The notes beneath the pieces are model-generated. The model saw only the letters and a program-made list of their open reading frames with translations. It made no database searches and was not told the DNA's origin. Shown one piece after another: positions 32,401 through 58,400 of a stretch of DNA of 64,000 nt (positions within the stretch are counted from its first letter, which is position 1; every line of letters begins with the position of its first letter). The position numbers were made by a program, and so were the translations under genes. This stretch comes from Perkinsela sp. CCAP 1560/9. Its lineage: Eukaryota; Protista; Euglenozoa: Kinetoplastea. The DNA lies in contig CBFFSA010000013.1 in NCBI GenBank assembly GCA_965644495.1, positions 248,001 to 312,000 on the forward strand, written 5' to 3'.

Positions 32401-32488
32401 GAGTAAAGTACAATCAGATGCGAATTCATCCAAACTTCTATAATTAGAATTTCGATGATTAAAAAAGAACGTATAACTAATTGCAGTT

Positions 32489-32599
32489 GAAAAAAGATAT
32501 TTTATTTATAAAAGGATTTTCTATAGACGCAAATATGCAAAATTTCCTGTTGGAGTTTCTTGAATCACAATTATTCTGAAATATTTAAGAAACTACGAC
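32489..32599 (+). repeat. Truncated first unit of the 280-bp satellite, left of the retroelement
   Basis: AAAAAGATATTTTATTTATAAAAGG...GAAACTACGAC matches the array unit with one substitution. Confidence 0.95.
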
Positions 32600-32619
32600 A
32601 TTAATTTCCCGCCATCTCA

Positions 32620-33417
32620 ATGCCGGAAAGTCAGCCCTCCGTTTCTGACGTCATGCGTCAGCTGTCGATATTAACTTCGAAATTCGAGTCTAGCGCGAGC
32701 CAACTTCAGAGTTTGCAGGAAGGAATGCTGCATTTGCAATCTCAAATGGGGCGTTTGGACCGTATGGAAGGCGATCTGAGCCGCTTAAGTACGCAAAATA
32801 AAGAAGTTTTACAAATGGTGGCGCGCGCGTCCGACTCGCCGTCTGCTTATGATATTTCCATCCATGACCTGCCACAGGAACACGTTTTGCAGCCGGAACA
32901 CTGGAAACCCGAGCATTACTGTTCTGACAATTTGCGTCGACAGCTCCTCCAACGCGTAGAGCATGAGGTGCGAAACCTCTTCGGAAACTCCGCGGATCCG
33001 ACTGCTGTGCCAGGAGATTCTATTGGTCTAAAAGATGCATTAGACACTATCCAAAGTCACTTGGAGGCTTGCGACGAGCTGGTGAAACGGGGCCAGGCAG
33101 TTTCCATGAAGTCGATTACTCCGGCGATCGAAAACGTCATTTTCCTCAGATACAAACACAAGTGGGGTCGGCGTGTCGCGCTCCAATGGAAAGATGCTCT
33201 AAAAAGTTCGCCGATCGGGTCAAGGTATGACAATGCTCACGACACCGCTATGGAGTTTTACAAGAACTGTTCGATCGCTCAGGGCGCAGTGTCTCTATCG
33301 CAGGCAAAAAACGGCGGAGGGCGCGGGTTCGCTTCCAGTGGGCGAGGGAGAACCCGCGGGCGCGGAGGGCGCGGAGGTCGCAGTTATGCATCTCCGGCTG
33401 CTCCCCCGTCCCAGTGA
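32620..33417 (+). CDS. Gag-like ORF1 of the YR retroelement
   Basis: First ORF of the element; N-terminal coiled-coil heptads and C-terminal RGG/GRG nucleic-acid-binding tail. Confidence 0.7.
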   Translation: MPESQPSVSDVMRQLSILTSKFESSASQLQSLQEGMLHLQSQMGRLDRMEGDLSRLSTQNKEVLQMVARASDSPSAYDISIHDLPQEHVLQPEHWKPEHYCSDNLRRQLLQRVEHEVRNLFGNSADPTAVPGDSIGLKDALDTIQSHLEACDELVKRGQAVSMKSITPAIENVIFLRYKHKWGRRVALQWKDALKSSPIGSRYDNAHDTAMEFYKNCSIAQGAVSLSQAKNGGGRGFASSGRGRTRGRGGRGGRSYASPAAPPSQ

Positions 33418-35719
33418 CGGGACCCCGGGGCCGGACGACCCCTGTCGCGGTACGGCTGTTCGGGAGGCCGTGCCGTGGAGAAAGTAAACTGCCCTGGTCC
33501 CGGCCAGGTCCCGATCAGAGATTATATTTTAGGTCACGATCAGATTTTGAAAAACATAATTTATATAAAGCTTCCGGAAGACGTGTTAGACAGCTGCGTG
33601 CAACGAGCGGAAGACATTTTCCGCGAAAAGTTTTCTCCTGGAACGCAGGAGATCATGAAAAGAATATGGAGGAGATTCGTGAGTTTCGTGGAAGGAGTCC
33701 ACACCTTGGGATATGTGCTAGACGAAGAGAGAATGCTTGCAGCTTTCGCTCTCCATCTATACGACCAAGAGAAGGTAAAAGGTCAAACGGTGGTACAATA
33801 CCTGTGCCATCTGGTAAACGAGTACTCGCTCTCGGGGGTAAAACTGGATATAGCTCGAATAGACGCTTTAAAAGCGGCCATGATGAGGAGGGCCACTCCC
33901 GCTATAAAGGCAAATCCTATGACCCACGAACAAGTAATTCAATTTTTGGATCAACCGCAGTTAACAGAGATCAAAAAAACGTTCGTGATGGTTTATTGGC
34001 TCAGCGGACAGAGACCTGGAGAACTGTTAGCTCTGGACGTAGACGAAGTGTCAGTGACTTCCGAGGCGAACGACGAAACTCATATGGATGCTAAGTCATA
34101 CCAAGAATGTTACGAATCAGGAAAGAAGTACTCCGCGCTGCATAAGAATGGTGGTCCCGCTGGTCTGGAGAAGGACAATTCGGACGTCTCTGTGGAATGC
34201 TCGCCGGTTAGGTCGCGAACAGTGGTTCGAGGGAGTAGAATTGAGAACTCTAAATCTCGCCTTGAAGAAATTACCGGCGGCGCTGAATCACCCTCGACTG
34301 AGAGACCGTTTCAGTCTATATTCCATTCGCAGGGGAGCGCTCCAACACATGGCGGCTTTGGAAGTCTCAGCGCAAGACATTCAATGTTTGACTCGGCACG
34401 TATCGGAAAACTCTCTCCGAGCGTACCTGGGATCCTATATGGATCCGAAAGCGGTAAAAGGTCTGGAAGTGTCCAGACTATTAGGACAACCCGCTCCCCT
34501 GTATTCAGAATTTCCTGTAGAAGAGAGTCGAACGACTATGTTGGAAAATACTCCGCGGACCCCATCAACGAGGGGGTCGATCATCGAGATCGATTCACCT
34601 CTCCTGGGGACCCAAATTTTCTCCAGGTTAATGGAGAAAAGGGTTCCTTGCGAAATGAGGCAGGCGGACCCATCGGAGCAACAGGACAGTTTTATACCCG
34701 TGGACTCACCTGTCGAAACGACGAGTTTAAACCCCCCCTGCTCGAACCACCAGAGGTTCGAGACACCCCTGTATCAAAAGGTGGCACGAGCATTTCCGTT
34801 ATCAAACCTGTTTCCACATTTTCCCCCGCCCGACAACGTGTCAATATTGGCCAGAAGCGTTCCTGTTTCCACCGTACCGGAACTCACTACTCCGTTTTCC
34901 GAGAGCCCTTGCAAACGAGATCAAAACCATCGATTCCCATCAGCACTACGAAACCTGTTTGGAACCCCCCCTCCTTTTCAATTGCTTGCCACCCCCGTTT
35001 TCGGGTCGGCCCCCCAGCAACAGGGTGTTCGAAGTCGATTACACTTTCCCCTTTCCCCTTGCCCTGTCCAGCCGAAGATCAATCGGGAAACAGATGCTCC
35101 AGTCCAGGCCTTATTTCTAGCCACGACACCACGGACAGAAAACCCAGATCCGATAAGCACCCCCTCTGCCTCGCGGTCCGAGATCCCTCAGGAAGATACT
35201 CCGGATCCGAGGGGGGTTTCTCCTGCCCCTCGCGCGGCTACATCACATCTGAAGACGCTGGGTCAGGGGGAATGTTCGCATGCTCTTCGGGAAGCAACCC
35301 CATATCAGGAAGCATCAAACCGCGCCACCCCACTTCTCACACCCGGTTTCGCCACCCCGCCGACCCCGTTCAATTTCCTGACGTTTCGGGATGCAGATCA
35401 TTGGACCCCACCTCCGCAACCAACGCCGCCACCAAACCCCGCCTCAATAATTCATTACGATCCCCCGCCGCAGATAAAAAGGCACAGAGTTCCTGCATAC
35501 CTGTACAACCCAACGGGGACGGACTACGCGTCCCCAGTTCAATCACGAGCGAGATTCAAAAAAGCCAAACTGGACGAACAAGAGCGGCAACTGGCAAAAG
35601 CGGAACAGGAGGATATGGAAGCTTTAAGAGAGATGGAGACCGATATAGAGCGGGACCTACATGTCCCAACAAAAACGAGGCGATCACAGATAGTGGAGCC
35701 TGCGTCGCCGCACCAATAG
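33418..35719 (+). pseudogene. Tyrosine recombinase, split by a 1-nt indel at ~34055-34094, with long Pro-rich tail
   Basis: SAM-like N-domain and WLSGQRPGE (catalytic R) in the ORF starting 33475; SHTK (K), YSIRRG (H/Y-x-x-R), LTRH (H) and LRAYL (Y) in the ORF starting 34088. Confidence 0.85.
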
Positions 35720-37302
35720 GTGTCGGCACCTCGCCATGGAAAGTATTATATGAGTTCGCGTCATACGGGTATGCGCGTTCCGGAAAACTTTTCAGCGAGA
35801 GAAACATACAGAAACCGCCGCAATGGCCTTTGGACCCGATGCCAGCGACGCGTTTAAATTTAGAATTATTAAAAAGCCTAGCACAAGCAGAACACCTGGA
35901 AGCTGAAGTCAATATATTAAAATACTTAGAAGATGAACATTTTAGCAGTTTGACGTGTACAAAATGTACACCTGTCTACAGTGGCGAATCCAAGTACCTC
36001 GCCCCCTTTTTAGGGGATTTAGTGAAAAGTGGTATTTTGAAACCATTACCGCGTCGAAAAGCGAAAATCTGGATGTCAGCGTTTCTAGTTCCAAAACAGA
36101 GAAAACGTACCTTAAGAGCGATACTAAATGCGATCCCACTGAACGAGATACAGGAGATGGTTCCCGGACCATTAGAGCTTCCGGGGTTATCTGACATTGC
36201 AGACATGATTCGGAGGCACGACTTTTTCTGCGAAACAGACGGGAAGAGCTGGTACAATCAATTCGATCTTCCATAAGCGGCGTTACCATTCTTTGCGATT
36301 CGTGTTTCGGGTCGCACATACGCTTGGTCTACATTACCCATGGGGTGGAAGAGTTCAGTGAAGATCGCACATGCCGCTACATCCATTCTTCACCATTTAC
36401 CGGGAGCTAAAAGTGAAACCTTGATGTTCATTGATAATGGCTACCGGTTCTCAAATTCAACAAAGGACTTGGAGAACGACATCGGTGAAGCTTTAGTAAG
36501 AGCAGAAAAAGTCTCAGCCACTTTAGTCGTTACAACACCGCCGCAAGCGGCGGGAACCATTTTAGGCGTTCAGGTAGATCTATCTCGAAAGACCCTTTGT
36601 TTACCCCGCGAATTTATTGAGAAGTTGGTAGCTTTGCGCAACACGTTTGAAACTCTTCAACGAATCCAATCTAGGCCCTCACATCGCTTAGTGTGGAAGG
36701 TACTGGGAACTATTTTTTGGGCCGCACGAGTGCTGGGGATTGCACAATGCGACTACATAACGGTGATGCTATGGATTCGCAACAGAGCCCGGTTTCTTTC
36801 TTGCAATCCGATCTACTGGGACAAGACCTGTTGGATGCGACCGGAATTTGTTACAGCCTTGATTGAACTCCTAAATCGTATCGAAATCAACACACCCCGG
36901 AGCGTTGGAGAGTCAGCAGACGAAAGTGAGCGTATCTACGTGGACGCGTCACAGGGCAGATGGGGTCTCGACTGGTGGGAAGCAGGGAATCTGCGAGATC
37001 GCAGTGGTATTTTTCCCTCCTGGTTGAAAGAGAAGCCAATCGCCTATAAAGAACTGTATGCTGCTGAGATGGGTCTGAAGGAATGTAAAGAACGAAAATT
37101 AAAAAATGTGACCATTATCTCTGACAACAAGAATGTAGTATCATGGATGTCCCGCTGGTGCGCGGGTCCTCCTCTTATTATGTCGTGGTTGCAGCGTCTG
37201 CGAAATGATTATTATGTGAAGGGCACGTTCAGGGAAATCATCTGGACAAGTTCGGATACAAATCTAGCGGATGCGCCATCCCGACGGGGAGGATCAGCCT
37301 AG
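35720..37302 (+). pseudogene. Reverse transcriptase plus RNase H, with in-frame TAA at 36274-36276
   Basis: AFLVPK..R.LRAILNA..LN, ETDGKSWYNQFDLP*, AWSTLPMGWKSS, FIDN, ILGVQVD; RNase H YVDASQ, IAYKELYA, ISDN, NLADAPSR; the frame continues across the stop. Confidence 0.88.
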
Positions 37303-37420
37303 ACGGAAAATTGCTATTCGTGAAAAGCGACGATTAAGATAAACTTACTGGAATTTCTATAGTTTCTCTTGGATAACAGCAACTAAATCCGTCGAACCGG
37401 AGGACGACCAACATGGTTAT

Positions 37421-40400
37421 ACACTTATTCTGAAATATTTAAGAAACTACGACTTGAATTGAATATAAGCTTAGTACTAACGAACAGAACTGTATTACGT
37501 TATTGTGTTATTCTCAAAGTAGAAACTGTTCCCAACAATGAAATTTTGGCGTCTACCTCATTTAGCACATCCTTTTGGTATCTATATTTTCTTCTTCGCT
37601 CGGCATGTAACTCGGACGCTATGGAAAAAGATATTTTATTTATAAAAGGATTTTCTATAGACGCAAATATGCAAAATTTCCTGTTGGAGTTTCTTGAATC
37701 ACACTTATTCTGAAATATTTAAGAAACTACGACTTGAATTGAATATAAGCTTAGTACTAACGAACAGAACTGTATTACGTTATTGTGTTATTCTCAAAGT
37801 AGAAACTGTTCCCAACAGTGAAATTTTGGCGTCTACTTCATTTAGCACATCCTTTTGGTATCTATATTTTCTTCTTCGCTCGGCATGTAACTCAGACGCT
37901 ATGGAAAAAGATATTTTATTTATAAAAGGATTTTCTATAGACGCAAATAAGCAAAATCTCCTTTTGGAGTTTCTTGAATCACACTTATTCTGAAATATTT
38001 AAGAAACTACGACTTGAATTGAATATAAGCTTAGTACTAACGAACAGAACTGTATTACGTTATTGTGTTATTCTCAAAGTAGAAACTGTTCCCAACAGTG
38101 AAATTTTGGCGTCTACCTCATTTAGCACATCCTTTTGGTATCTATATTTTCTTCTTCGCTCGGCATGTAACTCGGACGCTATGGAAAAAGATATTTTATT
38201 TATAAAAGGATTTTCTATAGACGCAAATATGCAAAATTTCCTGTTGGAGTTTCTTGAATCATACTTATTCTGAAATATTTAAGAAACTACGACTTGAATT
38301 GAATATAAGCTTAGTACTAACGAACAGAACTGTATTACGTTATTGTGTTATTCTCAAAGTAGAAACTGTTCCCAACAGCGAAATTTTGGCGTCTACTTCA
38401 TTTAGCACATCCTTTTGGTATCTATATTTTCTTCTTCGCTCGGCATGTAACTCGGACGCTATGGAAAAAGATATTTTATTTATAAAAGGATTTTCTATAG
38501 ACGCAAATAAGCAAAATCTCCTTTTGGAGTTTCTTGAATCACACTTATTCTGAAATATTTAAGAAACTACGACTTGAATTGAATATAAGCTTAGTACTAA
38601 CGAACAGAACTGTATTACGTTATTGTGTTATTCTCAAAGTAGAAACTGTTCCCAACAGTGAAATTTTGGCGTCTACCTCATTTAGCACATCCTTTTGGTA
38701 TCTATATTTTCTTCTTCGCTCGGCATGTAACTCGGACGCTATGGAAAAAGATATTTTATTTATAAAAGGATTTTCTATAGACGCAAATATGCAAAATTTC
38801 CTGTTGGAGTTTCTTGAATCATACTTATTCTGAAATATTTAAGAAACTAGGACTTGAATTGAATATAAGCTTAGTACTAACGAACAGAACTGTATTACGT
38901 TATTGTGTTATTCTCAAAGTAGAAACTGTTCCCAACAGTGAAATTTTGGCGTCTACCTCATTTAGCACATCCTTTTGGTATCTATATTTTCTTCTTCGCT
39001 CGGCATGTAACTCGGACGCTATGGAAAAAGATATTTTATTTATAAAAGGATTTTCTATAGACGCAAATATGCAAAATTTCCTGTTGGAGTTTCTTGAATC
39101 ATACTTATTCTGAAACATTTAAGAAACTACGACTTGAATTGAATATAAGCTTAGTACTAACGAACAGAACTGTATTACGTTATTGTGTTATTCTCAAAGT
39201 AGAAACTGTTCCCAACAGTGAAATTTTGGCGTCTACCTCATTTAGCACATCCTTTTGGTATCTATATTTTCTTCTTCGCTCGGCATGTAACTCGGACGCT
39301 ATGGAAAAAGATATTTTATTTATAAAAGGATTTTCTATAGACGCAAATATGCAAAATTTCCTGTTGGAGTTTCTTGAATCATACTTATTCTGAAATATTT
39401 AAGAAACTACGACTTGAATTGAATATAAGCTTAGTACTAACGAACAGAACTGTATTACGTTATTGTGTTATTCTCAAAGTAGAAACTGTTCCCAACAGTG
39501 AAATTTTGGCGTCTACCTCATTTAGCACATCCTTTTGGTATCTATATTTTCTTCTTCGCTCGGCATGTAACTCGGACGCTATGGAAAAAGATATTTTATT
39601 TATAAAAGGATTTTCTATAGACGCAAATATGCAAAATTTCCTGTTGGAGTTTCTTGAATCATACTTATTCTGAAATATTTAAGAAACTACGACTTGAATT
39701 GAATATAAGCTTAGTACTAACGAACAGAACTGTATTACGTTATTGTGTTATTCTCAAAGTAGAAACTGTTCCCAACAGTGAAATTTTGGCGTCTACCTCA
39801 TTTAGCACATCCTTTTGGTATCTATATTTTCTTCTTCGCTCGGCATGTAACTCGGACGCTATGGAAAAAGATATTTTATTTATAAAAGGATTTTCTATAG
39901 ACGCAAATATGCAAAATTTCCTGTTGGAGTTTCTTGAATCATACTTATTCTGAAACATTTAAGAAACTACGACTTGAATTGAATATAAGCTTAGTACTAA
40001 CGAACAGAACTGTATTACGTTATTGTGTTATTCTCAAAGTAGAAACTGTTCCCAACAGTGAAATTTTGGCGTCTACCTCATTTAGCACATCCTTTTGGTA
40101 TCTATATTTTCTTCTTCGCTCGGCATGTAACTCAGACGCTATGGAAAAAGATATTTTATTTATAAAAGGATTTTCTATAGACGCAAATAAGCAAAATTTC
40201 CTGTTGGAGTTTCTTGAATCACACTTATTCTGAAATATTTAAGAAACTACGACTTGAATTGAATATAAGCTTAGTACTAACGAACAGAACTGTATTACGT
40301 TATTGTGTTATTCTCAAAGTAGAAACTGTTCCCAACAGTGAAATTTTGGCGTCTACCTCATTTAGCACATCCTTTTGGTATCTATATTTTCTTCTTCGCT

Positions 40401-43400
40401 CGGCATGTAACTCGGACGCTATGGAAAAAGATATTTTATTTATAAAAGGATTTTCTATAGACGCAAATATGCAAAATTTCCTGTTGGAGTTTCTTGAATC
40501 ATACTTATTCTGAAATATTTAAGAAACTACGACTTGAATTGAATATAAGCTTAGTACTAACGAACAGAACTGTATTACGTTATTGTGTTATTCTCAAAGT
40601 AGAAACTGTTCCCAACAGTGAAATTTTGGCGTCTACCTCATTTAGCACATCCTTTTGGTGTCTATATTTTCTTCTTCGCTCGGCATGTAACTCGGACGCT
40701 ATGGAAAAAGATATTTTATTTATAAAAGGATTTTCTATAGACGCAAATATGCAAAATTTCCTGTTGGAGTTTCTTGAATCATACTTATTCTGAAATATTT
40801 AAGAAACTACGACTTGAATTGAATATAAGCTTAGTACTAACGAACAGAACTGTATTACGTTATTGTGTTATTCTCAAAGTAGAAACTGTTCCCAACAGTG
40901 AAATTTTGGCGTCTACTTCATTTAGCACATCCTTTTGGTATCTATATTTTCTTCTTCGCTCGGCATGTAACTCAGACGCTATGGAAAAAGATATTTTATT
41001 TATAAAAGGATTTTCTATAGACGCAAATAAGCAAAATCTCCTTTTGGAGTTTCTTGAATCACACTTATTCTGAAATATTTAAGAAACTACGACTTGAATT
41101 GAATATAAGCTTAGTACTAACGAACAGAACTGTATTACGTTATTGTGTTATTCTCAAAGTAGAAACTGTTCCCAACAGTGAAATTTTGGCGTCTACTTCA
41201 TTTAGCACATCCTTTTGGTATCTATATTTTCTTCTTCGCTCGGCATGTAACTCGGACGCTATGGAAAAAGATATTTTATTTATAAAAGGATTTTCTATAG
41301 ACGCAAATAAGCAAAATTTCCTGTTGGAGTTTCTTGAATCACACTTATTCTGAAATATTTAAGAAACTACGACTTGAATTGAATATAAGCTTAGTACTAA
41401 CGAACAGAACTGTATTACGTTATTGTGTTATTCTCAAAGTAGAAACTGTTCCCAACAGTGAAATTTTGGCGTCTACCTCATTTAGCACATCCTTTTGGTA
41501 TCTATATTTTCTTCTTCGCTCGGCATGTAACTCGGACGCTATGGAAAAAGATATTTTATTTATAAAAGGATTTTCTATAGACGCAAATATGCAAAATTTC
41601 CTGTTGGAGTTTCTTGAATCATACTTATTCTGAAATATTTAAGAAACTACGACTTGAATTGAATATAAGCTTAGTACTAACGAACAGAACTGTATTACGT
41701 TATTGTGTTATTCTCAAAGTAGAAACTGTTCCCAACAGTGAAATTTTGGCGTCTACCTCATTTAGCACATCCTTTTGGTGTCTATATTTTCTTCTTCGCT
41801 CGGCATGTAACTCGGACGCTATGGAAAAAGATATTTTATTTATAAAAGGATTTTCTATAGACGCAAATATGCAAAATTTCCTGTTGGAGTTTCTTGAATC
41901 ATACTTATTCTGAAATATTTAAGAAACTACGACTTGAATTGAATATAAGCTTAGTACTAACGAACAGAACTGTATTACGTTATTGTGTTATTCTCAAAGT
42001 AGAAACTGTTCCCAACAGTGAAATTTTGGCGTCTACTTCATTTAGCACATCCTTTTGGTATCTATATTTTCTTCTTCGCTCGGCATGTAACTCAGACGCT
42101 ATGGAAAAAGATATTTTATTTATAAAAGGATTTTCTATAGACGCAAATAAGCAAAATCTCCTTTTGGAGTTTCTTGAATCACACTTATTCTGAAATATTT
42201 AAGAAACTACGACTTGAATTGAATATAAGCTTAGTACTAACGAACAGAACTGTATTACGTTATTGTGTTATTCTCAAAGTAGAAACTGTTCCCAACAGTG
42301 AAATTTTGGCGTCTACCTCATTTAGCACATCCTTTTGGTATCTATATTTTCTTCTTCGCTCGGCATGTAACTCGGACGCTATGGAAAAAGATATTTTATT
42401 TATAAAAGGATTTTCTATAGACGCAAATATGCAAAATTTCCTGTTGGAGTTTCTTGAATCATACTTATTCTGAAATATTTAAGAAACTACGACTTGAATT
42501 GAATATAAGCTTAGTACTAACGAACAGAACTGTATTACGTTATTGTGTTATTCTCAAAGTAGAAACTGTTCCCAACAGTGAAATTTTGGCGTCTACCTCA
42601 TTTAGCACATCCTTTTGGTATCTATATTTTCTTCTTCGCTCGGCATGTAACTCAGACGCTATGGAAAAAGATATTTTATTTATAAAAGGATTTTCTATAG
42701 ACGCAAATAAGCAAAATTTCCTGTTGGAGTTTCTTGAATCACACTTATTCTGAAATATTTAAGAAACTACGACTTGAATTGAATATAAGCTTAGTACTAA
42801 CGAACAGAACTGTATTACGTTATTGTGTTATTCTCAAAGTAGAAACTGTTCCCAACAGTGAAATTTTGGCGTCTACCTCATTTAGCACATCCTTTTGGTA
42901 TCTATATTTTCTTCTTCGCTCGGCATGTAACTCGGACGCTATGGAAAAAGATATTTTATTTATAAAAGGATTTTCTATAGACGCAAATATGCAAAATTTC
43001 CTGTTGGAGTTTCTTGAATCATACTTATTCTGAAATATTTAAGAAACTACGACTTGAATTGAATATAAGCTTAGTACTAACGAACAGAACTGTATTACGT
43101 TATTGTGTTATTCTCAAAGTAGAAACTGTTCCCAACAGTGAAATTTTGGCGTCTACCTCATTTAGCACATCCTTTTGGTATCTATATTTTCTTCTTCGCT
43201 CGGCATGTAACTCAGACGCTATGGAAAAAGATATTTTATTTATAAAAGGATTTTCTATAGACGCAAATAAGCAAAATCTCCTTTTGGAGTTTCTTGAATC
43301 ACACTTATTCTGAAATATTTAAGAAACTACGACTTGAATTGAATATAAGCTTAGTACTAACGAACAGAACTGTATTACGTTATTGTGTTATTCTCAAAGT

Positions 43401-46400
43401 AGAAACTGTTCCCAACAGTGAAATTTTGGCGTCTACTTCATTTAGCACATCCTTTTGGTATCTATATTTTCTTCTTCGCTCGGCATGTAACTCGGACGCT
43501 ATGGAAAAAGATATTTTATTTATAAAAGGATTTTCTATAGACGCAAATAAGCAAAATTTCCTGTTGGAGTTTCTTGAATCACACTTATTCTGAAATATTT
43601 AAGAAACTACGACTTGAATTGAATATAAGCTTAGTACTAACGAACAGAACTGTATTACGTTATTGTGTTATTCTCAAAGTAGAAACTGTTCCCAACAGTG
43701 AAATTTTGGCGTCTACTTCATTTAGCACATCCTTTTGGTATCTATATTTTCTTCTTCGCTCGGCATGTAACTCAGACGCTATGGAAAAAGATATTTTATT
43801 TATAAAAGGATTTTCTATAGACGCAAATAAGCAAAATCTCCTTTTGGAGTTTCTTGAATCACACTTATTCTGAAATATTTAAGAAACTACGACTTGAATT
43901 GAATATAAGCTTAGTACTAACGAACAGAACTGTATTACGTTATTGTGTTATTCTCAAAGTAGAAACTGTTCCCAACAGTGAAATTTTGGCGTCTACTTCA
44001 TTTAGCACATCCTTTTGGTATCTATATTTTCTTCTTCGCTCGGCATGTAACTCGGACGCTATGGAAAAAGATATTTTATTTATAAAAGGATTTTCTATAG
44101 ACGCAAATAAGCAAAATTTCCTGTTGGAGTTTCTTGAATCACACTTATTCTGAAATATTTAAGAAACTACGACTTGAATTGAATATAAGCTTAGTACTAA
44201 CGAACAGAACTGTATTACGTTATTGTGTTATTCTCAAAGTAGAAACTGTTCCCAACAGTGAAATTTTGGCGTCTACCTCATTTAGCACATCCTTTTGGTA
44301 TCTATATTTTCTTCTTCGCTCGGCATGTAACTCGGACGCTATGGAAAAAGATATTTTATTTATAAAAGGATTTTCTATAGACGCAAATATGCAAAATTTC
44401 CTGTTGGAGTTTCTTGAATCATACTTATTCTGAAATATTTAAGAAACTACGACTTGAATTGAATATAAGCTTAGTACTAACGAACAGAACTGTATTACGT
44501 TATTGTGTTATTCTCAAAGTAGAAACTGTTCCCAACAGTGAAATTTTGGCGTCTACCTCATTTAGCACATCCTTTTGGTGTCTATATTTTCTTCTTCGCT
44601 CGGCATGTAACTCGGACGCTATGGAAAAAGATATTTTATTTATAAAAGGATTTTCTATAGACGCAAATATGCAAAATTTCCTGTTGGAGTTTCTTGAATC
44701 ATACTTATTCTGAAATATTTAAGAAACTACGACTTGAATTGAATATAAGCTTAGTACTAACGAACAGAACTGTATTACGTTATTGTGTTATTCTCAAAGT
44801 AGAAACTGTTCCCAACAGTGAAATTTTGGCGTCTACTTCATTTAGCACATCCTTTTGGTATCTATATTTTCTTCTTCGCTCGGCATGTAACTCAGACGCT
44901 ATGGAAAAAGATATTTTATTTATAAAAGGATTTTCTATAGACGCAAATAAGCAAAATCTCCTTTTGGAGTTTCTTGAATCACACTTATTCTGAAATATTT
45001 AAGAAACTACGACTTGAATTGAATATAAGCTTAGTACTAACGAACAGAACTGTATTACGTTATTGTGTTATTCTCAAAGTAGAAACTGTTCCCAACAGTG
45101 AAATTTTGGCGTCTACCTCATTTAGCACATCCTTTTGGTATCTATATTTTCTTCTTCGCTCGGCATGTAACTCGGACGCTATGGAAAAAGATATTTTATT
45201 TATAAAAGGATTTTCTATAGACGCAAATATGCAAAATTTCCTGTTGGAGTTTCTTGAATCATACTTATTCTGAAATATTTAAGAAACTACGACTTGAATT
45301 GAATATAAGCTTAGTACTAACGAACAGAACTGTATTACGTTATTGTGTTATTCTCAAAGTAGAAACTGTTCCCAACAGTGAAATTTTGGCGTCTACCTCA
45401 TTTAGCACATCCTTTTGGTATCTATATTTTCTTCTTCGCTCGGCATGTAACTCAGACGCTATGGAAAAAGATATTTTATTTATAAAAGGATTTTCTATAG
45501 ACGCAAATAAGCAAAATTTCCTGTTGGAGTTTCTTGAATCACACTTATTCTGAAATATTTAAGAAACTACGACTTGAATTGAATATAAGCTTAGTACTAA
45601 CGAACAGAACTGTATTACGTTATTGTGTTATTCTCAAAGTAGAAACTGTTCCCAACAGTGAAATTTTGGCGTCTACCTCATTTAGCACATCCTTTTGGTA
45701 TATATATTTTCTTCTTCGCTCGGCATGTAACTCGGACGCTATGGAAAAAGATATTTTATTTATAAAAGGATTTTCTATAGACGCAAATATGCAAAATTTC
45801 CTGTTGGAGTTTCTTGAATCATACTTATTCTGAAATATTTAAGAAACTACGACTTGAATTGAATATAAGCTTAGTACTAACGAACAGAACTGTATTACGT
45901 TATTGTGTTATTCTCAAAGTAGAAACTGTTCCCAACAGTGAAATTTTGGCGTCTACTTCATTTAGCACATCCTTTTGGTATCTATATTTTCTTCTTCGCT
46001 CGGCATGTAACTCAGACGCTATGGAAAAAGATATTTTATTTATAAAAGGATTTTCTATAGACGCAAATAAGCAAAATCTCCTTTTGGAGTTTCTTGAATC
46101 ACACTTATTCTGAAATATTTAAGAAACTACGACTTGAATTGAATATAAGCTTAGTACTAACGAACAGAACTGTATTACGTTATTGTGTTATTCTCAAAGT
46201 AGAAACTGTTCCCAACAGTGAAATTTTGGCGTCTACTTCATTTAGCACATCCTTTTGGTATCTATATTTTCTTCTTCGCTCGGCATGTAACTCGGACGCT
46301 ATGGAAAAAGATATTTTATTTATAAAAGGATTTTCTATAGACGCAAATAAGCAAAATTTCCTGTTGGAGTTTCTTGAATCACACTTATTCTGAAATATTT

Positions 46401-49400
46401 AAGAAACTACGACTTGAATTGAATATAAGCTTAGTACTAACGAACAGAACTGTATTACGTTATTGTGTTATTCTCAAAGTAGAAACTGTTCCCAACAGTG
46501 AAATTTTGGCGTCTACCTCATTTAGCACATCCTTTTGGTATCTATATTTTCTTCTTCGCTCGGCATGTAACTCGGACGCTATGGAAAAAGATATTTTATT
46601 TATAAAAGGATTTTCTATAGACGCAAATATGCAAAATTTCCTGTTGGAGTTTCTTGAATCATACTTATTCTGAAATATTTAAGAAACTACGACTTGAATT
46701 GAATATAAGCTTAGTACTAACGAACAGAACTGTATTACGTTATTGTGTTATTCTCAAAGTAGAAACTGTTCCCAACAGTGAAATTTTGGCGTCTACCTCA
46801 TTTAGCACATCCTTTTGGTGTCTATATTTTCTTCTTCGCTCGGCATGTAACTCGGACGCTATGGAAAAAGATATTTTATTTATAAAAGGATTTTCTATAG
46901 ACGCAAATATGCAAAATTTCCTGTTGGAGTTTCTTGAATCATACTTATTCTGAAATATTTAAGAAACTACGACTTGAATTGAATATAAGCTTAGTACTAA
47001 CGAACAGAACTGTATTACGTTATTGTGTTATTCTCAAAGTAGAAACTGTTCCCAACAGTGAAATTTTGGCGTCTACTTCATTTAGCACATCCTTTTGGTA
47101 TCTATATTTTCTTCTTCGCTCGGCATGTAACTCAGACGCTATGGAAAAAGATATTTTATTTATAAAAGGATTTTCTATAGACGCAAATAAGCAAAATCTC
47201 CTTTTGGAGTTTCTTGAATCACACTTATTCTGAAATATTTAAGAAACTACGACTTGAATTGAATATAAGCTTAGTACTAACGAACAGAACTGTATTACGT
47301 TATTGTGTTATTCTCAAAGTAGAAACTGTTCCCAACAGTGAAATTTTGGCGTCTACCTCATTTAGCACATCCTTTTGGTATCTATATTTTCTTCTTCGCT
47401 CGGCATGTAACTCGGACGCTATGGAAAAAGATATTTTATTTATAAAAGGATTTTCTATAGACGCAAATATGCAAAATTTCCTGTTGGAGTTTCTTGAATC
47501 ATACTTATTCTGAAATATTTAAGAAACTACGACTTGAATTGAATATAAGCTTAGTACTAACGAACAGAACTGTATTACGTTATTGTGTTATTCTCAAAGT
47601 AGAAACTGTTCCCAACAGCGAAATTTTGGCGTCTACTTCATTTAGCACATCCTTTTGGTATCTATATTTTCTTCTTCGCTCGGCATGTAACTCGGACGCT
47701 ATGGAAAAAGATATTTTATTTATAAAAGGATTTTCTATAGACGCAAATAAGCAAAATCTCCTTTTGGAGTTTCTTGAATCACACTTGTTCTGAAATATTT
47801 AAGAAACTACGACTTGAATTGAATATAAGCTTAGTACTAACGAACAGAACTGTATTACGTTATTGTGTTATTCTCAAAGTAGAAACTGTTCCCAACAGTG
47901 AAATTTTGGCGTCTACCTCATTTAGCACATCCTTTTGGTATCTATATTTTCTTCTTCGCTCGGCATGTAACTCGGACGCTATGGAAAAAGATATTTTATT
48001 TATAAAAGGATTTTCTATAGACGCAAATATGCAAAATTTCCTGTTGGAGTTTCTTGAATCATACTTATTCTGAAATATTTAAGAAACTAGGACTTGAATT
48101 GAATATAAGCTTAGTACTAACGAACAGAACTGTATTACGTTATTGTGTTATTCTCAAAGTAGAAACTGTTCCCAACAGTGAAATTTTGGCGTCTACCTCA
48201 TTTAGCACATCCTTTTGGTATCTATATTTTCTTCTTCGCTCGGCATGTAACTCGGACGCTATGGAAAAAGATATTTTATTTATAAAAGGATTTTCTATAG
48301 ACGCAAATATGCAAAATTTCCTGTTGGAGTTTCTTGAATCATACTTATTCTGAAATATTTAAGAAACTAGGACTTGAATTGAATATAAGCTTAGTACTAA
48401 CGAACAGAACTGTATTACGTTATTGTGTTATTCTCAAAGTAGAAACTGTTCCCAACAGTGAAATTTTGGCGTCTACCTCATTTAGCACATCCTTTTGGTA
48501 TCTATATTTTCTTCTTCGCTCGGCATGTAACTCGGACGCTATGGAAAAAGATATTTTATTTATAAAAGGATTTTCTATAGACGCAAATATGCAAAATTTC
48601 CTGTTGGAGTTTCTTGAATCATACTTATTCTGAAACATTTAAGAAACTACGACTTGAATTGAATATAAGCTTAGTACTAACGAACAGAACTGTATTACGT
48701 TATTGTGTTATTCTCAAAGTAGAAACTGTTCCCAACAGTGAAATTTTGGCGTCTACCTCATTTAGCACATCCTTTTGGTATCTATATTTTCTTCTTCGCT
48801 CGGCATGTAACTCGGACGCTATGGAAAAAGATATTTTATTTATAAAAGGATTTTCTATAGACGCAAATATGCAAAATTTCCTGTTGGAGTTTCTTGAATC
48901 ATACTTATTCTGAAATATTTAAGAAACTACGACTTGAATTGAATATAAGCTTAGTACTAACGAACAGAACTGTATTACGTTATTGTGTTATTCTCAAAGT
49001 AGAAACTGTTCCCAACAGTGAAATTTTGGCGTCTACCTCATTTAGCACATCCTTTTGGTATCTATATTTTCTTCTTCGCTCGGCATGTAACTCGGACGCT
49101 ATGGAAAAAGATATTTTATTTATAAAAGGATTTTCTATAGACGCAAATATGCAAAATTTCCTGTTGGAGTTTCTTGAATCATACTTATTCTGAAATATTT
49201 AAGAAACTACGACTTGAATTGAATATAAGCTTAGTACTAACGAACAGAACTGTATTACGTTATTGTGTTATTCTCAAAGTAGAAACTGTTCCCAACAGTG
49301 AAATTTTGGCGTCTACCTCATTTAGCACATCCTTTTGGTATCTATATTTTCTTCTTCGCTCGGCATGTAACTCAGACGCTATGGAAAAAGATATTTTATT

Positions 49401-52400
49401 TATAAAAGGATTTTCTATAGACGCAAATAAGCAAAATTTCCTGTTGGAGTTTCTTGAATCACACTTATTCTGAAATATTTAAGAAACTACGACTTGAATT
49501 GAATATAAGCTTAGTACTAACGAACAGAACTGTATTACGTTATTGTGTTATTCTCAAAGTAGAAACTGTTCCCAACAGTGAAATTTTGGCGTCTACCTCA
49601 TTTAGCACATCCTTTTGGTGTCTATATTTTCTTCTTCGCTCGGCATGTAACTCGGACGCTATGGAAAAAGATATTTTATTTATAAAAGGATTTTCTATAG
49701 ACGCAAATATGCAAAATTTCCTGTTGGAGTTTCTTGAATCATACTTATTCTGAAATATTTAAGAAACTACGACTTGAATTGAATATAAGCTTAGTACTAA
49801 CGAACAGAACTGTATTACGTTATTGTGTTATTCTCAAAGTAGAAACTGTTCCCAACAGTGAAATTTTGGCGTCTACTTCATTTAGCACATCCTTTTGGTA
49901 TCTATATTTTCTTCTTCGCTCGGCATGTAACTCAGACGCTATGGAAAAAGATATTTTATTTATAAAAGGATTTTCTATAGACGCAAATAAGCAAAATCTC
50001 CTTTTGGAGTTTCTTGAATCACACTTATTCTGAAATATTTAAGAAACTACGACTTGAATTGAATATAAGCTTAGTACTAACGAACAGAACTGTATTACGT
50101 TATTGTGTTATTCTCAAAGTAGAAACTGTTCCCAACAGTGAAATTTTGGCGTCTACTTCATTTAGCACATCCTTTTGGTATCTATATTTTCTTCTTCGCT
50201 CGGCATGTAACTCGGACGCTATGGAAAAAGATATTTTATTTATAAAAGGATTTTCTATAGACGCAAATAAGCAAAATTTCCTGTTGGAGTTTCTTGAATC
50301 ACACTTATTCTGAAATATTTAAGAAACTACGACTTGAATTGAATATAAGCTTAGTACTAACGAACAGAACTGTATTACGTTATTGTGTTATTCTCAAAGT
50401 AGAAACTGTTCCCAACAGTGAAATTTTGGCGTCTACCTCATTTAGCACATCCTTTTGGTATCTATATTTTCTTCTTCGCTCGGCATGTAACTCGGACGCT
50501 ATGGAAAAAGATATTTTATTTATAAAAGGATTTTCTATAGACGCAAATATGCAAAATTTCCTGTTGGAGTTTCTTGAATCATACTTATTCTGAAATATTT
50601 AAGAAACTACGACTTGAATTGAATATAAGCTTAGTACTAACGAACAGAACTGTATTACGTTATTGTGTTATTCTCAAAGTAGAAACTGTTCCCAACAGTG
50701 AAATTTTGGCGTCTACCTCATTTAGCACATCCTTTTGGTGTCTATATTTTCTTCTTCGCTCGGCATGTAACTCGGACGCTATGGAAAAAGATATTTTATT
50801 TATAAAAGGATTTTCTATAGACGCAAATATGCAAAATTTCCTGTTGGAGTTTCTTGAATCATACTTATTCTGAAATATTTAAGAAACTACGACTTGAATT
50901 GAATATAAGCTTAGTACTAACGAACAGAACTGTATTACGTTATTGTGTTATTCTCAAAGTAGAAACTGTTCCCAACAGTGAAATTTTGGCGTCTACTTCA
51001 TTTAGCACATCCTTTTGGTATCTATATTTTCTTCTTCGCTCGGCATGTAACTCAGACGCTATGGAAAAAGATATTTTATTTATAAAAGGATTTTCTATAG
51101 ACGCAAATAAGCAAAATCTCCTTTTGGAGTTTCTTGAATCACACTTATTCTGAAATATTTAAGAAACTACGACTTGAATTGAATATAAGCTTAGTACTAA
51201 CGAACAGAACTGTATTACGTTATTGTGTTATTCTCAAAGTAGAAACTGTTCCCAACAGTGAAATTTTGGCGTCTACCTCATTTAGCACATCCTTTTGGTA
51301 TCTATATTTTCTTCTTCGCTCGGCATGTAACTCGGACGCTATGGAAAAAGATATTTTATTTATAAAAGGATTTTCTATAGACGCAAATATGCAAAATTTC
51401 CTGTTGGAGTTTCTTGAATCATACTTATTCTGAAATATTTAAGAAACTACGACTTGAATTGAATATAAGCTTAGTACTAACGAACAGAACTGTATTACGT
51501 TATTGTGTTATTCTCAAAGTAGAAACTGTTCCCAACAGTGAAATTTTGGCGTCTACCTCATTTAGCACATCCTTTTGGTATCTATATTTTCTTCTTCGCT
51601 CGGCATGTAACTCAGACGCTATGGAAAAAGATATTTTATTTATAAAAGGATTTTCTATAGACGCAAATAAGCAAAATTTCCTGTTGGAGTTTCTTGAATC
51701 ACACTTATTCTGAAATATTTAAGAAACTACGACTTGAATTGAATATAAGCTTAGTACTAACGAACAGAACTGTATTACGTTATTGTGTTATTCTCAAAGT
51801 AGAAACTGTTCCCAACAGTGAAATTTTAGCGTCTACCTCATTTAGCACATCCTTTTGGTGTCTATATTTTCTTCTTCGCTCGGCATGTAACTCGGACGCT
51901 ATGGAAAAAGATATTTTATTTATAAAAGGATTTTCTATAGACGCAAATATGCAAAATTTCCTGTTGGAGTTTCTTGAATCATACTTATTCTGAAATATTT
52001 AAGAAACTACGACTTGAATTGAATATAAGCTTAGTACTAACGAACAGAACTGTATTACGTTATTGTGTTATTCTCAAAGTAGAAACTGTTCCCAACAGTG
52101 AAATTTTGGCGTCTACTTCATTTAGCACATCCTTTTGGTATCTATATTTTCTTCTTCGCTCGGCATGTAACTCAGACGCTATGGAAAAAGATATTTTATT
52201 TATAAAAGGATTTTCTATAGACGCAAATAAGCAAAATCTCCTTTTGGAGTTTCTTGAATCACACTTATTCTGAAATATTTAAGAAACTACGACTTGAATT
52301 GAATATAAGCTTAGTACTAACGAACAGAACTGTATTACGTTATTGTGTTATTCTCAAAGTAGAAACTGTTCCCAACAGTGAAATTTTGGCGTCTACTTCA

Positions 52401-55400
52401 TTTAGCACATCCTTTTGGTATCTATATTTTCTTCTTCGCTCGGCATGTAACTCGGACGCTATGGAAAAAGATATTTTATTTATAAAAGGATTTTCTATAG
52501 ACGCAAATATGCAAAATTTCCTGTTGGAGTTTCTTGAATCATACTTATTCTGAAATATTTAAGAAACTACGACTTGAATTGAATATAAGCTTAGTACTAA
52601 CGAACAGAACTGTATTACGTTATTGTGTTATTCTCAAAGTAGAAACTGTTCCCAACAGTGAAATTTTGGCGTCTACCTCATTTAGCACATCCTTTTGGTA
52701 TCTATATTTTCTTCTTCGCTCGGCATGTAACTCGGACGCTATGGAAAAAGATATTTTATTTATAAAAGGATTTTCTATAGACGCAAATATGCAAAATTTC
52801 CTGTTGGAGTTTCTTGAATCATACTTATTCTGAAATATTTAAGAAACTACGACTTGAATTGAATATAAGCTTAGTACTAACGAACAGAACTGTATTACGT
52901 TATTGTGTTATTCTCAAAGTAGAAACTGTTCCCAACAGTGAAATTTTGGCGTCTACCTCATTTAGCACATCCTTTTGGTGTCTATATTTTCTTCTTCGCT
53001 CGGCATGTAACTCGGACGCTATGGAAAAAGATATTTTATTTATAAAAGGATTTTCTATAGACGCAAATATGCAAAATTTCCTGTTGGAGTTTCTTGAATC
53101 ATACTTATTCTGAAATATTTAAGAAACTACGACTTGAATTGAATATAAGCTTAGTACTAACGAACAGAACTGTATTACGTTATTGTGTTATTCTCAAAGT
53201 AGAAACTGTTCCCAACAGTGAAATTTTGGCGTCTACTTCATTTAGCACATCCTTTTGGTATCTATATTTTCTTCTTCGCTCGGCATGTAACTCGGACGCT
53301 ATGGAAAAAGATATTTTATTTATAAAAGGATTTTCTATAGACGCAAATAAGCAAAATCTCCTTTTGGAGTTTCTTGAATCACACTTATTCTGAAATATTT
53401 AAGAAACTACGACTTGAATTGAATATAAGCTTAGTACTAACGAACAGAACTGTATTACGTTATTGTGTTATTCTCAAAGTAGAAACTGTTCCCAACAGTG
53501 AAATTTTGGCGTCTACCTCATTTAGCACATCCTTTTGGTATCTATATTTTCTTCTTCGCTCGGCATGTAACTCGGACGCTATGGAAAAAGATATTTTATT
53601 TATAAAAGGATTTTCTATAGACGCAAATATGCAAAATTTCCTGTTGGAGTTTCTTGAATCATACTTATTCTGAAATATTTAAGAAACTACGACTTGAATT
53701 GAATATAAGCTTAGTACTAACGAACAGAACTGTATTACGTTATTGTGTTATTCTCAAAGTAGAAACTGTTCCCAACAGTGAAATTTTGGCGTCTACCTCA
53801 TTTAGCACATCCTTTTGGTATCTATATTTTCTTCTTCGCTCGGCATGTAACTCGGACGCTATGGAAAAAGATATTTTATTTATAAAAGGATTTTCTATAG
53901 ACGCAAATAAGCAAAATCTCCTTTTGGAGTTTCTTGAATCACACTTGTTCTGAAATATTTAAGAAACTACGACTTGAATTGAATATAAGCTTAGTACTAA
54001 CGAACAGAACTGTATTACGTTATTGTGTTATTCTCAAAGTAGAAACTGTTCCCAACAGTGAAATTTTGGCGTCTACCTCATTTAGCACATCCTTTTGGTA
54101 TCTATATTTTCTTCTTCGCTCGGCATGTAACTCGGACGCTATGGAAAAAGATATTTTATTTATAAAAGGATTTTCTATAGACGCAAATATGCAAAATTTC
54201 CTGTTGGAGTTTCTTGAATCATACTTATTCTGAAATATTTAAGAAACTAGGACTTGAATTGAATATAAGCTTAGTACTAACGAACAGAACTGTATTACGT
54301 TATTGTGTTATTCTCAAAGTAGAAACTGTTCCCAACAGTGAAATTTTGGCGTCTACCTCATTTAGCACATCCTTTTGGTATCTATATTTTCTTCTTCGCT
54401 CGGCATGTAACTCGGACGCTATGGAAAAAGATATTTTATTTATAAAAGGATTTTCTATAGACGCAAATATGCAAAATTTCCTGTTGGAGTTTCTTGAATC
54501 ATACTTATTCTGAAATATTTAAGAAACTAGGACTTGAATTGAATATAAGCTTAGTACTAACGAACAGAACTGTATTACGTTATTGTGTTATTCTCAAAGT
54601 AGAAACTGTTCCCAACAGTGAAATTTTGGCGTCTACCTCATTTAGCACATCCTTTTGGTATCTATATTTTCTTCTTCGCTCGGCATGTAACTCGGACGCT
54701 ATGGAAAAAGATATTTTATTTATAAAAGGATTTTCTATAGACGCAAATATGCAAAATTTCCTGTTGGAGTTTCTTGAATCATACTTATTCTGAAACATTT
54801 AAGAAACTACGACTTGAATTGAATATAAGCTTAGTACTAACGAACAGAACTGTATTACGTTATTGTGTTATTCTCAAAGTAGAAACTGTTCCCAACAGTG
54901 AAATTTTGGCGTCTACCTCATTTAGCACATCCTTTTGGTATCTATATTTTCTTCTTCGCTCGGCATGTAACTCGGACGCTATGGAAAAAGATATTTTATT
55001 TATAAAAGGATTTTCTATAGACGCAAATATGCAAAATTTCCTGTTGGAGTTTCTTGAATCATACTTATTCTGAAATATTTAAGAAACTACGACTTGAATT
55101 GAATATAAGCTTAGTACTAACGAACAGAACTGTATTACGTTATTGTGTTATTCTCAAAGTAGAAACTGTTCCCAACAGTGAAATTTTGGCGTCTACCTCA
55201 TTTAGCACATCCTTTTGGTATCTATATTTTCTTCTTCGCTCGGCATGTAACTCGGACGCTATGGAAAAAGATATTTTATTTATAAAAGGATTTTCTATAG
55301 ACGCAAATATGCAAAATTTCCTGTTGGAGTTTCTTGAATCATACTTATTCTGAAATATTTAAGAAACTACGACTTGAATTGAATATAAGCTTAGTACTAA

Positions 55401-58400
55401 CGAACAGAACTGTATTACGTTATTGTGTTATTCTCAAAGTAGAAACTGTTCCCAACAGTGAAATTTTGGCGTCTACCTCATTTAGCACATCCTTTTGGTA
55501 TCTATATTTTCTTCTTCGCTCGGCATGTAACTCAGACGCTATGGAAAAAGATATTTTATTTATAAAAGGATTTTCTATAGACGCAAATAAGCAAAATTTC
55601 CTGTTGGAGTTTCTTGAATCATACTTATTCTGAAATATTTAAGAAACTACGACTTGAATTGAATATAAGCTTAGTACTAACGAACAGAACTGTATTACGT
55701 TATTGTGTTATTCTCAAAGTAGAAACTGTTCCCAACAGTGAAATTTTGGCGTCTACTTCATTTAGCACATCCTTTTGGTATCTATATTTTCTTCTTCGCT
55801 CGGCATGTAACTCAGACGCTATGGAAAAAGATATTTTATTTATAAAAGGATTTTCTATAGACGCAAATAAGCAAAATCTCCTTTTGGAGTTTCTTGAATC
55901 ACACTTATTCTGAAATATTTAAGAAACTACGACTTGAATTGAATATAAGCTTAGTACTAACGAACAGAACTGTATTACGTTATTGTGTTATTCTCAAAGT
56001 AGAAACTGTTCCCAACAGTGAAATTTTGGCGTCTACCTCATTTAGCACATCCTTTTGGTATCTATATTTTCTTCTTCGCTCGGCATGTAACTCGGACGCT
56101 ATGGAAAAAGATATTTTATTTATAAAAGGATTTTCTATAGACGCAAATATGCAAAATTTCCTGTTGGAGTTTCTTGAATCATACTTATTCTGAAATATTT
56201 AAGAAACTACGACTTGAATTGAATATAAGCTTAGTACTAACGAACAGAACTGTATTACGTTATTGTGTTATTCTCAAAGTAGAAACTGTTCCCAACAGTG
56301 AAATTTTGGCGTCTACTTCATTTAGCACATCCTTTTGGTATCTATATTTTCTTCTTCGCTCGGCATGTAACTCAGACGCTATGGAAAAAGATATTTTATT
56401 TATAAAAGGATTTTCTATAGACGCAAATAAGCAAAATCTCCTTTTGGAGTTTCTTGAATCACACTTATTCTGAAATATTTAAGAAACTACGACTTGAATT
56501 GAATATAAGCTTAGTACTAACGAACAGAACTGTATTACGTTATTGTGTTATTCTCAAAGTAGAAACTGTTCCCAACAGTGAAATTTTGGCGTCTACCTCA
56601 TTTAGCACATCCTTTTGGTATCTATATTTTCTTCTTCGCTCGGCATGTAACTCGGACGCTATGGAAAAAGATATTTTATTTATAAAAGGATTTTCTATAG
56701 ACGCAAATATGCAAAATTTCCTGTTGGAGTTTCTTGAATCATACTTATTCTGAAATATTTAAGAAACTACGACTTGAATTGAATATAAGCTTAGTACTAA
56801 CGAACAGAACTGTATTACGTTATTGTGTTATTCTCAAAGTAGAAACTGTTCCCAACAGTGAAATTTTGGCGTCTACCTCATTTAGCACATCCTTTTGGTA
56901 TCTATATTTTCTTCTTCGCTCGGCATGTAACTCAGACGCTATGGAAAAAGATATTTTATTTATAAAAGGATTTTCTATAGACGCAAATAAGCAAAATTTC
57001 CTGTTGGAGTTTCTTGAATCACACTTATTCTGAAATATTTAAGAAACTACGACTTGAATTGAATATAAGCTTAGTACTAACGAACAGAACTGTATTACGT
57101 TATTGTGTTATTCTCAAAGTAGAAACTGTTCCCAACAGTGAAATTTTGGCGTCTACCTCATTTAGCACATCCTTTTGGTATCTATATTTTCTTCTTCGCT
57201 CGGCATGTAACTCGGACGCTATGGAAAAAGATATTTTATTTATAAAAGGATTTTCTATAGACGCAAATATGCAAAATTTCCTGTTGGAGTTTCTTGAATC
57301 ATACTTATTCTGAAATATTTAAGAAACTACGACTTGAATTGAATATAAGCTTAGTACTAACGAACAGAACTGTATTACGTTATTGTGTTATTCTCAAAGT
57401 AGAAACTGTTCCCAACAGTGAAATTTTGGCGTCTACCTCATTTAGCACATCCTTTTGGTATCTATATTTTCTTCTTCGCTCGGCATGTAACTCAGACGCT
57501 ATGGAAAAAGATATTTTATTTATAAAAGGATTTTCTATAGACGCAAATAAGCAAAATTTCCTGTTGGAGTTTCTTGAATCACACTTATTCTGAAATATTT
57601 AAGAAACTACGACTTGAATTGAATATAAGCTTAGTACTAACGAACAGAACTGTATTACGTTATTGTGTTATTCTCAAAGTAGAAACTGTTCCCAACAGTG
57701 AAATTTTGGCGTCTACCTCATTTAGCACATCCTTTTGGTATCTATATTTTCTTCTTCGCTCGGCATGTGACTCGGACGCTATGGAAAAAGATATTTTATT
57801 TATAAAAGGATTTTCTATAGACGCAAATATGCAAAATTTCCTGTTGGAGTTTCTTGAATCATACTTATTCTGAAATATTTAAGAAACTACGACTTGAATT
57901 GAATATAAGCTTAGTACTAACGAACAGAACTGTATTACGTTATTGTGTTATTCTCAAAGTAGAAACTGTTCCCAACAGTGAAATTTTGGCGTCTACCTCA
58001 TTTAGCACATCCTTTTGGTGTCTATATTTTCTTCTTCGCTCGGCATGTAACTCGGACGCTATGGAAAAAGATATTTTATTTATAAAAGGATTTTCTATAG
58101 ACGCAAATATGCAAAATTTCCTGTTGGAGTTTCTTGAATCATACTTATTCTGAAATATTTAAGAAACTACGACTTGAATTGAATATAAGCTTAGTACTAA
58201 CGAACAGAACTGTATTACGTTATTGTGTTATTCTCAAAGTAGAAACTGTTCCCAACAGTGAAATTTTGGCGTCTACCTCATTTAGCACATCCTTTTGGTA
58301 TCTATATTTTCTTCTTCGCTCGGCATGTAACTCGGACGCTATGGAAAAAGATATTTTATTTATAAAAGGATTTTCTATAGACGCAAATATGCAAAATTTC

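Follow-up and report, generated by a model that had tools for sequence, protein, structure and literature searches.

A 64,000-nucleotide stretch of contig CBFFSA010000013.1 of Perkinsela sp. CCAP 1560/9 (positions 248,001 to 312,000), hereafter the window, was found to contain a decayed retroelement followed by a long tandem array. Given the repeat structure of its ends and the order of its genes, the element is interpreted as a tyrosine recombinase (YR) retrotransposon with split direct repeats (SDRs). Its layout resembles that of the VIPER and TATE elements, namely A1, gag, YR, reverse transcriptase (RT) with RNase H, B1, A2 and B2, and its terminal AB unit would have been multiplied into a satellite. 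We assign this interpretation a probability of about 0.8. The original prediction had likewise described a YR retrotransposon, but one targeted to a pre-existing satellite and flanked by an att- or lox-like duplication of 33 bp.

The repeat unit is numbered from window position 37421, such that the 33-mer, here called r, occupies positions 1-33, a segment Y positions 34-204, a run of five adenines (A5) positions 205-209, and a segment X positions 210-280. In the window, the order is A1, body and B1, after which X-r-Y-A5 is repeated at least 94 more times (Table 1). The two copies of r flanking the body, at 32567-32599 (ACAATT...) and 37421-37453 (ACACTT...), differ by one mismatch, as had been predicted. 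Its presence in each 280-bp array unit was also verified: r occurs 96 times in the window when up to three mismatches are allowed, whereas no occurrence is expected. Since r is the stretch common to the end of A and the start of B, it is found on both sides of the body and once per AB unit.

The 33-mers had been taken as the boundaries of the element. However, satellite-like sequence with 94-97% identity to the unit also lies to the left of the body, at 32490-32599. Because the start had been placed at 32600, only about 20 bp appeared to precede the gag ATG; counted from the real 5' start, the leader is of about 130 bp. The prediction further stated that long terminal repeats (LTRs), inverted terminal repeats and split direct repeats were all lacking. 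No terminal inverted repeats were found in 32400-37800, in agreement with that statement, but the 5' end carries A1 and the 3' end carries B1-A2-B2..., which are split direct repeats.

Related copies, designated by L numbers, present the same plan in a simpler form. The close relatives of the window element all come from ENA assembly ERZ24900291, and L009 from another assembly. L005, with 52% RT identity, has an intact gag, a YR protein of 793 amino acids and an RT/RNase H protein of 525 amino acids. Its A1 (4084-4206) and A2 (9376-9498) are identical over 123 nt, and its B1 (9163-9276) and B2 (9469-9582) over 114 nt, with a period of 306 and an A/B overlap of 30 nt, which closes A1, opens B1 and recurs once in A2B2. 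In the more distant L009, whose YR is about 28% identical, A1 (7202-7310) and A2 (11228-11336) are identical over 109 nt, B1 (11105-11230) and B2 (11311-11436) over 126 nt, the unit is of 206 bp, and the overlap is of 26 nt. Hence, an A/B overlap of 26-39 nt is present at both body junctions in four lineages, and in each of them about 20 nt separate r from the gag ATG downstream. Given L005 and L009 have this same short overlap inside ordinary split direct repeats, arranged A1-body-B1-A2-B2 with a single AB unit, the 33-mer of the window is the A/B overlap and not an att site or a target-site duplication (TSD). A related side observation concerns L010, a Logan short-read contig with an L009-type element, which has the 26-nt r at both of its ends (5-30 and 3825-3850, 3820 bp apart). 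Such ends are expected if assembly graphs branch at r, and the contig could be mistaken for a circular one. Neither r nor the X...r pattern was matched when JGI metagenomes were scanned at the DNA level, and an Rfam search with window positions 1-38500 gave no hits either.

Copies closer to the window element were also compared. L004 is a second version of the window locus (a haplotype, a strain or a recent duplicate), 98.6% identical over 15.4 kb of host genes and element, with the same left junction. Its array has 4.75 units and ends at unit position 209 (...GCTATGG AAAAA), past which unique DNA and host genes are found, including a MatE transporter. Within the element, the window and L004 differ by 35 substitutions and 9 indels, and are thus distinct sequences. 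L003 is a third insertion, 98.9% identical, which starts at the identical base after unrelated DNA. L002 is a copy with 78% identity, in which homology spans X, r, body, r and Y (110 bases on the left and 209 on the right) and A-runs bound both sides; as in L004, it ends exactly at unit position 209, with unrelated DNA beyond. Its r has 39 nt, is identical at both positions, and presents the same differences from the window's r at both. When five 5' ends from three subfamilies are aligned (window, L003, L002, L005 and L007), each consists of unrelated flank, an A-run, GATA(T/A)TTTA... and an invariant TATAAA. As a side observation, L007 contains at 5252-12616 two tandem copies of the L005 family with RT deleted, which share AB repeats (A-gag-YR-B-A-gag-YR-...), a non-autonomous deletion derivative.

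The array itself covers 37423-64000 according to Tandem Repeats Finder (TRF), with a period of 280, 94.9 copies and 98% matches, and it reaches the window end after about 26 kb; as it continues beyond, the copy number in the window is a lower bound. The AB copy number at one locus therefore varies from 4.75 in L004 to at least 95 in the window, a difference of about 20-fold. The array is composed of few unit variants in recurring multi-unit blocks, e.g., units 4-9, 37-42, 59-64 and 89-94. These recurring blocks indicate that at least part of the array growth is segmental duplication by unequal exchange. To judge from the copies compared, the array is not a host satellite: its 280-bp monomer is the AB terminal unit of the element itself, amplified.

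The coding content supports the identification as a YR retrotransposon, a part of the prediction that was upheld by gene order, by a Cre-like recombinase fold and by RT and RNase H domains. The order gag, YR, RT/RNase H is seen in the window, L002, L004, L005, L009 and L012. The window's open reading frames (ORFs) were analysed without bridging any stop or frameshift. Fragments of the broken ORFs were searched separately, and naturally intact relatives (L002, L004, L005 and L009) were used for identifying the proteins. Pfam barely recognises the proteins of the window copy, which is why intact relatives were used for YR and RT: the window gag has no Pfam match, and the search with the window's own ORFs gave nothing usable. 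The YR of the window is split by a frameshift near 34082-34086, and L004 RT reads through at the position of the window's stop at 36274-36276. With a frameshift in YR and a stop in RT, the window copy is, by its reading frames, dead.

A YR profile built from two intact domains matched only 63 proteins among 1.84 billion representatives. The distant matches are bona fide Phage_integrase proteins according to Pfam, and one relative was found in transcriptome data of the prokinetoplastid Apiculatamorpha spiralis. An alignment of 21 YR homologues has the catalytic Arg, Lys, His and Tyr in every sequence, and the second Arg in at least 90%. The AlphaFold model obtained with the 21-sequence alignment presents a predicted local distance difference test (pLDDT) score of 91, against only 40 when a two-sequence alignment was given. 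In both of its domains, the model superposes on Cre-loxP structures, with a template modelling (TM) score of 0.66-0.70 and an E-value of 2e-10. When the YR family was searched as a sequence profile against the PDB, no recombinase was returned; fold comparison alone recovered Cre.

Regarding RT, the relative P0001 has a Pfam RVT_1 match of 1.9e-07, which passes the threshold. The RNase H motifs read DAS...E...SDN...NLAD, and the motifs of both RT and RNase H are conserved in five members. Word-indexed protein searches with RT/RNase H, gag and the RT profile returned the element's own family and one distant protein only, and no named VIPER or TATE protein was among the homologues looked up.

Further observations concern these genes. 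RT motif C reads (F/Y)IDN (FIDN at about 36470-36481 in the window), and its I-D-N is invariant in five clade members, down to 22% identity. This motif is usually YxDD, and Asn in place of the second Asp is unusual in a reverse transcriptase. Window 34100-35720 holds two long ORFs in different frames (933 and 543 amino acids), which overlap in the proline-rich region between YR and RT and are both open for about 1.6 kb. The L005 counterpart of this proline-rich region is the C-terminal extension of its 793-amino-acid YR protein.

Table 1. Parts of the retroelement and of its array in the window, and lengths of the A-runs at the junctions of the element and its relatives.
Feature	Position	Strand	Evidence or composition
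A1, 5' half of split direct repeat: A-run 32490-32495, X 32496-32566 (invariant TATAAA), r 32567-32599	32490..32599	+	94-97% identity to unit 205-280 plus 1-33
gag-like ORF, 265 amino acids, intact, RGG-rich tail, no zinc knuckle	32620..33417	+	85% identity to L002 gag, 42% to L005 gag
YR, N-terminal part, frame 1, through first catalytic Arg	33583..34086	+	tblastn to intact L002 YR residues 1-168, 81% identity; conserved SGQRPG motif
YR, C-terminal catalytic part (frame 2, about 34082-34654), then proline-rich extension	34082..35719	+	tblastn to L002 YR residues 170-364, other frame; motifs YSIRRGAL and TRHVSENSLRAY
RT/RNase H, frame 1, in-frame stop at 36274-36276	35653..37302	+	tblastn to L005 and L009 RT/RNase H, 49% and 32% identity
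B1, 3' half of split direct repeat: r 37421-37453, Y 37454-37624, A5 37625-37629	37421..37629	+	homologous to L002 3' terminal region
Tandem array of complete AB units (X-r-Y-A5, 280 bp each), A2B2 to about A95B95	37630..64000	+	TRF; runs off window end
5' outer junctions			A6 (window/L004), A6 (L003), A16 (L002), A12 (L005), A7 (L007), A12 (L009)
3' outer junctions			A5 (L004), A10 (L002), A9 (L009)
Internal Y|X junction			A5 (window family), A6 (L005 family), A3 (L009 family)

All outer junctions seen have an A-run. This points to integration at the junction of Y and X in a circle rather than at the 33-mer, i.e., the element appears to integrate at A-tracts. In the proposal for DIRS-order elements, a short oligonucleotide at the junction of the element ends matches the target and is left on both sides (PMC7192593), and true TSDs are reported to be lacking in VIPER and TATE (PMC12278014). 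The A-run junctions fit both of these descriptions. A possible cycle would start with transcription inside A1, X carrying the conserved TATAAA. Reverse transcription would follow, and the internal B-A junction would serve to restore the ends, in line with the SDR model in the literature. The cDNA would then be joined into a circle, whose Y-(A)n-X junction would recombine with a genomic A-tract through the YR, leaving A-runs on both sides. The array would grow after insertion, for which unequal AB exchange, recombination by the YR at r or at the junction A-tract, and repeated template switching at r are candidate routes.

The A-runs are also adjoined by other elements: in L002 from 10779 and in L007 from 12577, LINE-like (long interspersed nuclear element) sequences start exactly at the 3' A-run of the YR elements, in the same orientation. 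They share 41% protein identity with each other, and RVT_1 is found in the L007 ORF and in the called gene neighbouring in L002. The junction A-tract may also be a target for non-LTR elements.

Some points weigh against the interpretation as an SDR element with an amplified AB unit. L002 consists of A1-body-B1 only, with no A2B2 up to the contig end; the LINE-like element starting at its 3' A-run may have displaced the A2B2 unit. The overlap r has no place in the textbook scheme of SDR elements. A poly(A) tail, and not the target, could be the origin of the A-runs. Neither RNA nor cDNA nor a circular form of the element was observed, and the right end of the window's array lies outside the window.

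A role for the overlap was also considered. The 26-39 nt shared by A and B may serve the Cre-like recombinase as a functional site, or be a point at which RT must switch template, and full copies, solo AB units and long AB arrays would be interconverted through it; we regard this as unlikely. If true, it would amount to an element-encoded mechanism for making and resizing satellite DNA, caught in the act, with 4.75 units in one version of a locus and at least 95 in the other. A rival explanation, which we consider highly unlikely, is a two-part system in which the AB unit (X-r-Y) is a SIRE-like platform that spreads or multiplies independently, while the body is a cassette entering and leaving via the YR at r, such that full elements, solo AB units and arrays are interconvertible. 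The position of r exactly at both body junctions in four lineages is consistent with this, as is the number of AB units among copies, which ranges from 0 to at least 94. Recombination of r with r would reduce a full element to exactly one 280-bp AB unit, and out-of-register exchange at r or AB would produce AB arrays as well as the tandem A-body-B-A-body seen in L007. However, ordinary homologous exchange between AB repeats of 200-300 bp explains all of the same products, and RT template switching at r is a further possible route to them. In addition, neither solo AB units nor r-body circles were seen in the available DNA, and the co-variation of r with body and AB is also expected if all are copied together in each replication cycle.

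According to the original prediction, a circular cDNA composed of the body and one 33-mer (attP-like) recombined site-specifically into a 33-mer of a pre-existing host satellite (attB-like), the element being a satellite- or centromere-homing YR retroelement. In its favour, r forms a direct repeat around the body and is present in every unit, and the YR fold is Cre-like. Furthermore, the predicted central quasi-palindrome of r is present: its arms, TTCTGAAAT and ATTTAAGAA, form 8 of 9 pairs. This score is reached in 0.6% of 33-mer shuffles, and in 6% of whole-unit shuffles when it may fall anywhere in the unit. L002 even has a better dyad than the window despite its changed sequence, with a hairpin z of -3.1. 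Nevertheless, L005 and L009 have dyad arms no longer than 5-6 bp and, folded as single strands, three of the four lineage versions do no better than shuffles; due to both, the evidence from the dyad is weak and the lox-like reading is weakly supported. A stable hairpin, tried as a separate candidate, was rejected on the same folding result. The 3' part of r, AAACTAC, is common to three of the four lineages.

Other evidence runs against homing. Instead of sitting at the same satellite position with 33-mer boundaries, L002, L003, L005, L007 and L009 have A-runs and unrelated DNA at their borders. At these independent non-satellite loci, the body is found together with X and Y, which have the same outer ends and diverge in step with it (78% in L002), and the single-AB relatives L005 and L009 have the same overlap. 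Nor does the array resemble a centromere serving as host target, since in L004 it amounts to 4.75 units between unique DNA and genes. Insertion by homing to a satellite thus appears largely refuted already by the independent copies, and we see very little chance of it being correct. Equally improbable is an assembly artefact, i.e., an over-expanded or mis-joined array at a locus that really has a handful of AB units as in L004: the second version does have only 4.75 units, and a 26-kb array of units 98-99% identical exceeds typical accurate long reads, but the two versions differ by 35 substitutions and 9 indels in the element and by 1.4% overall, hence are not one sequence collapsed or expanded, and the array has structured variants in repeated multi-unit blocks, which are needed by an assembler and shown by real arrays.

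The neighbouring sequence was also inspected. Window 1-30363 has about a dozen intronless host genes, all on the minus strand in a polycistron-like arrangement. They include a SNF2 helicase, coatomer beta, a MORN protein, AMPK beta, an M16 peptidase and RPN1, as well as a Bud23-like methyltransferase, eS21, eIF6 and an MFS transporter. This arrangement of twelve genes, intronless and all in one direction, looks euglenozoan or kinetoplastid-like. The eS21, however, is a short form, with best matches to Toxoplasma and Euglena ribosomes. A DNA transposon adjoins the retroelement on the left (30493-31797), with an ORF at 30683-31555 matching DDE_Tnp_IS1595 (ISXO2/Merlin-like, E-value 1e-11) and terminal inverted repeats of 37-43 nt, of which an extra copy is found 10 kb away at 20678-20721. 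An ORF of 963 amino acids (22849-25740) with no Pfam match contains, at 24604-24735, 5.5 tandem copies of a 24-bp unit (84% matches). Lastly, purine/pyrimidine-rich low-complexity tracts at 18480-19171 include inverted repeats of 30-41 nt, about 560-620 nt apart, in a stretch with 55% G+C that overlaps the methyltransferase ORF.

In comparison with known systems, the closest likeness is to VIPER and TATE, which have the order gag, YR, RT/RNase H and SDRs arranged A1/B1-A2-B2, the Trypanosoma cruzi SIRE corresponding to A2B2; TATE has also been found in tandem clusters (PMC6681497, PMC12278014). The window element shares with VIPER and TATE the three ORFs (gag-like, YR and RT/RNase H) in the same order, the SDRs and the lack of a classical TSD, and, as with SIRE, a short AB unit shares its halves with the ends of a coding element. 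The assignment to a VIPER-like superfamily would accordingly be one of architecture, not of RT phylogeny. Differences are nevertheless evident. In T. cruzi, A and B are reported without overlap, SIRE having about 30 bp of its own between them (PMC6681497). With its A/B overlap of 26-39 nt, the present element thus truly departs from the relatives described. The AB unit is found here in at least 95 tandem copies instead of one, the window element's gag has an RGG tail and no CCHC box, and RT motif C is (F/Y)IDN. The conserved A/B overlap flanking the body and the A-tracts at every insertion junction are testable features beyond the standard description. The gag-YR-RT/RNase H and split-repeat architecture, so far described for the kinetoplastid VIPER and TATE, would be extended to a very rare divergent clade.

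The repeat plan A1-[ORFs]-B1A2B2 is found in Ngaro, PAT-like, VIPER and TATE elements (PMC6681497, PMC12278014, PMC8547959), and isolated AB units, similar to solo LTRs, have been reported for Ngaro elements in Cafeteria (PMC8547959). Although the plan is shared with Ngaro and PAT-like elements, YR is downstream of RT/RNase H in those, whereas here YR (33583-34654) is upstream of RT/RNase H (35653-37302). PAT-like elements also carry a methyltransferase, whereas no extra domain was found here. DIRS-1 of Dictyostelium is likewise a retroelement with YR and RT/RNase H, and the A-runs described here fit its shared-oligonucleotide pattern (PMC7192593); however, it has inverted terminal repeats and an internal complementary region, neither of which is present in the window element. 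With Cre/loxP and Xer/dif, the likeness lies in the protein: the YR carries the catalytic residues R-K-R-H-Y, and its model can be laid over Cre, but r is without paired inverted arms of 11-13 bp around a spacer of 6-8 bp, and its dyad is short, AT-rich and poorly conserved across lineages.

Finally, the array resembles tandem arrays derived from LTRs, given its monomer is the non-coding terminal repeat of a retroelement and its higher-order variants are block-wise. It differs from them in still being joined to the parent element at the normal A2B2 position, and in the about 20-fold copy difference between versions of the locus. The window would thus provide a clean case in which a satellite array arose from the terminal repeat of a YR retrotransposon and is still attached to its parent; this parent element, normal relatives with a single AB unit and a version of the locus with a short array are all available for comparison.

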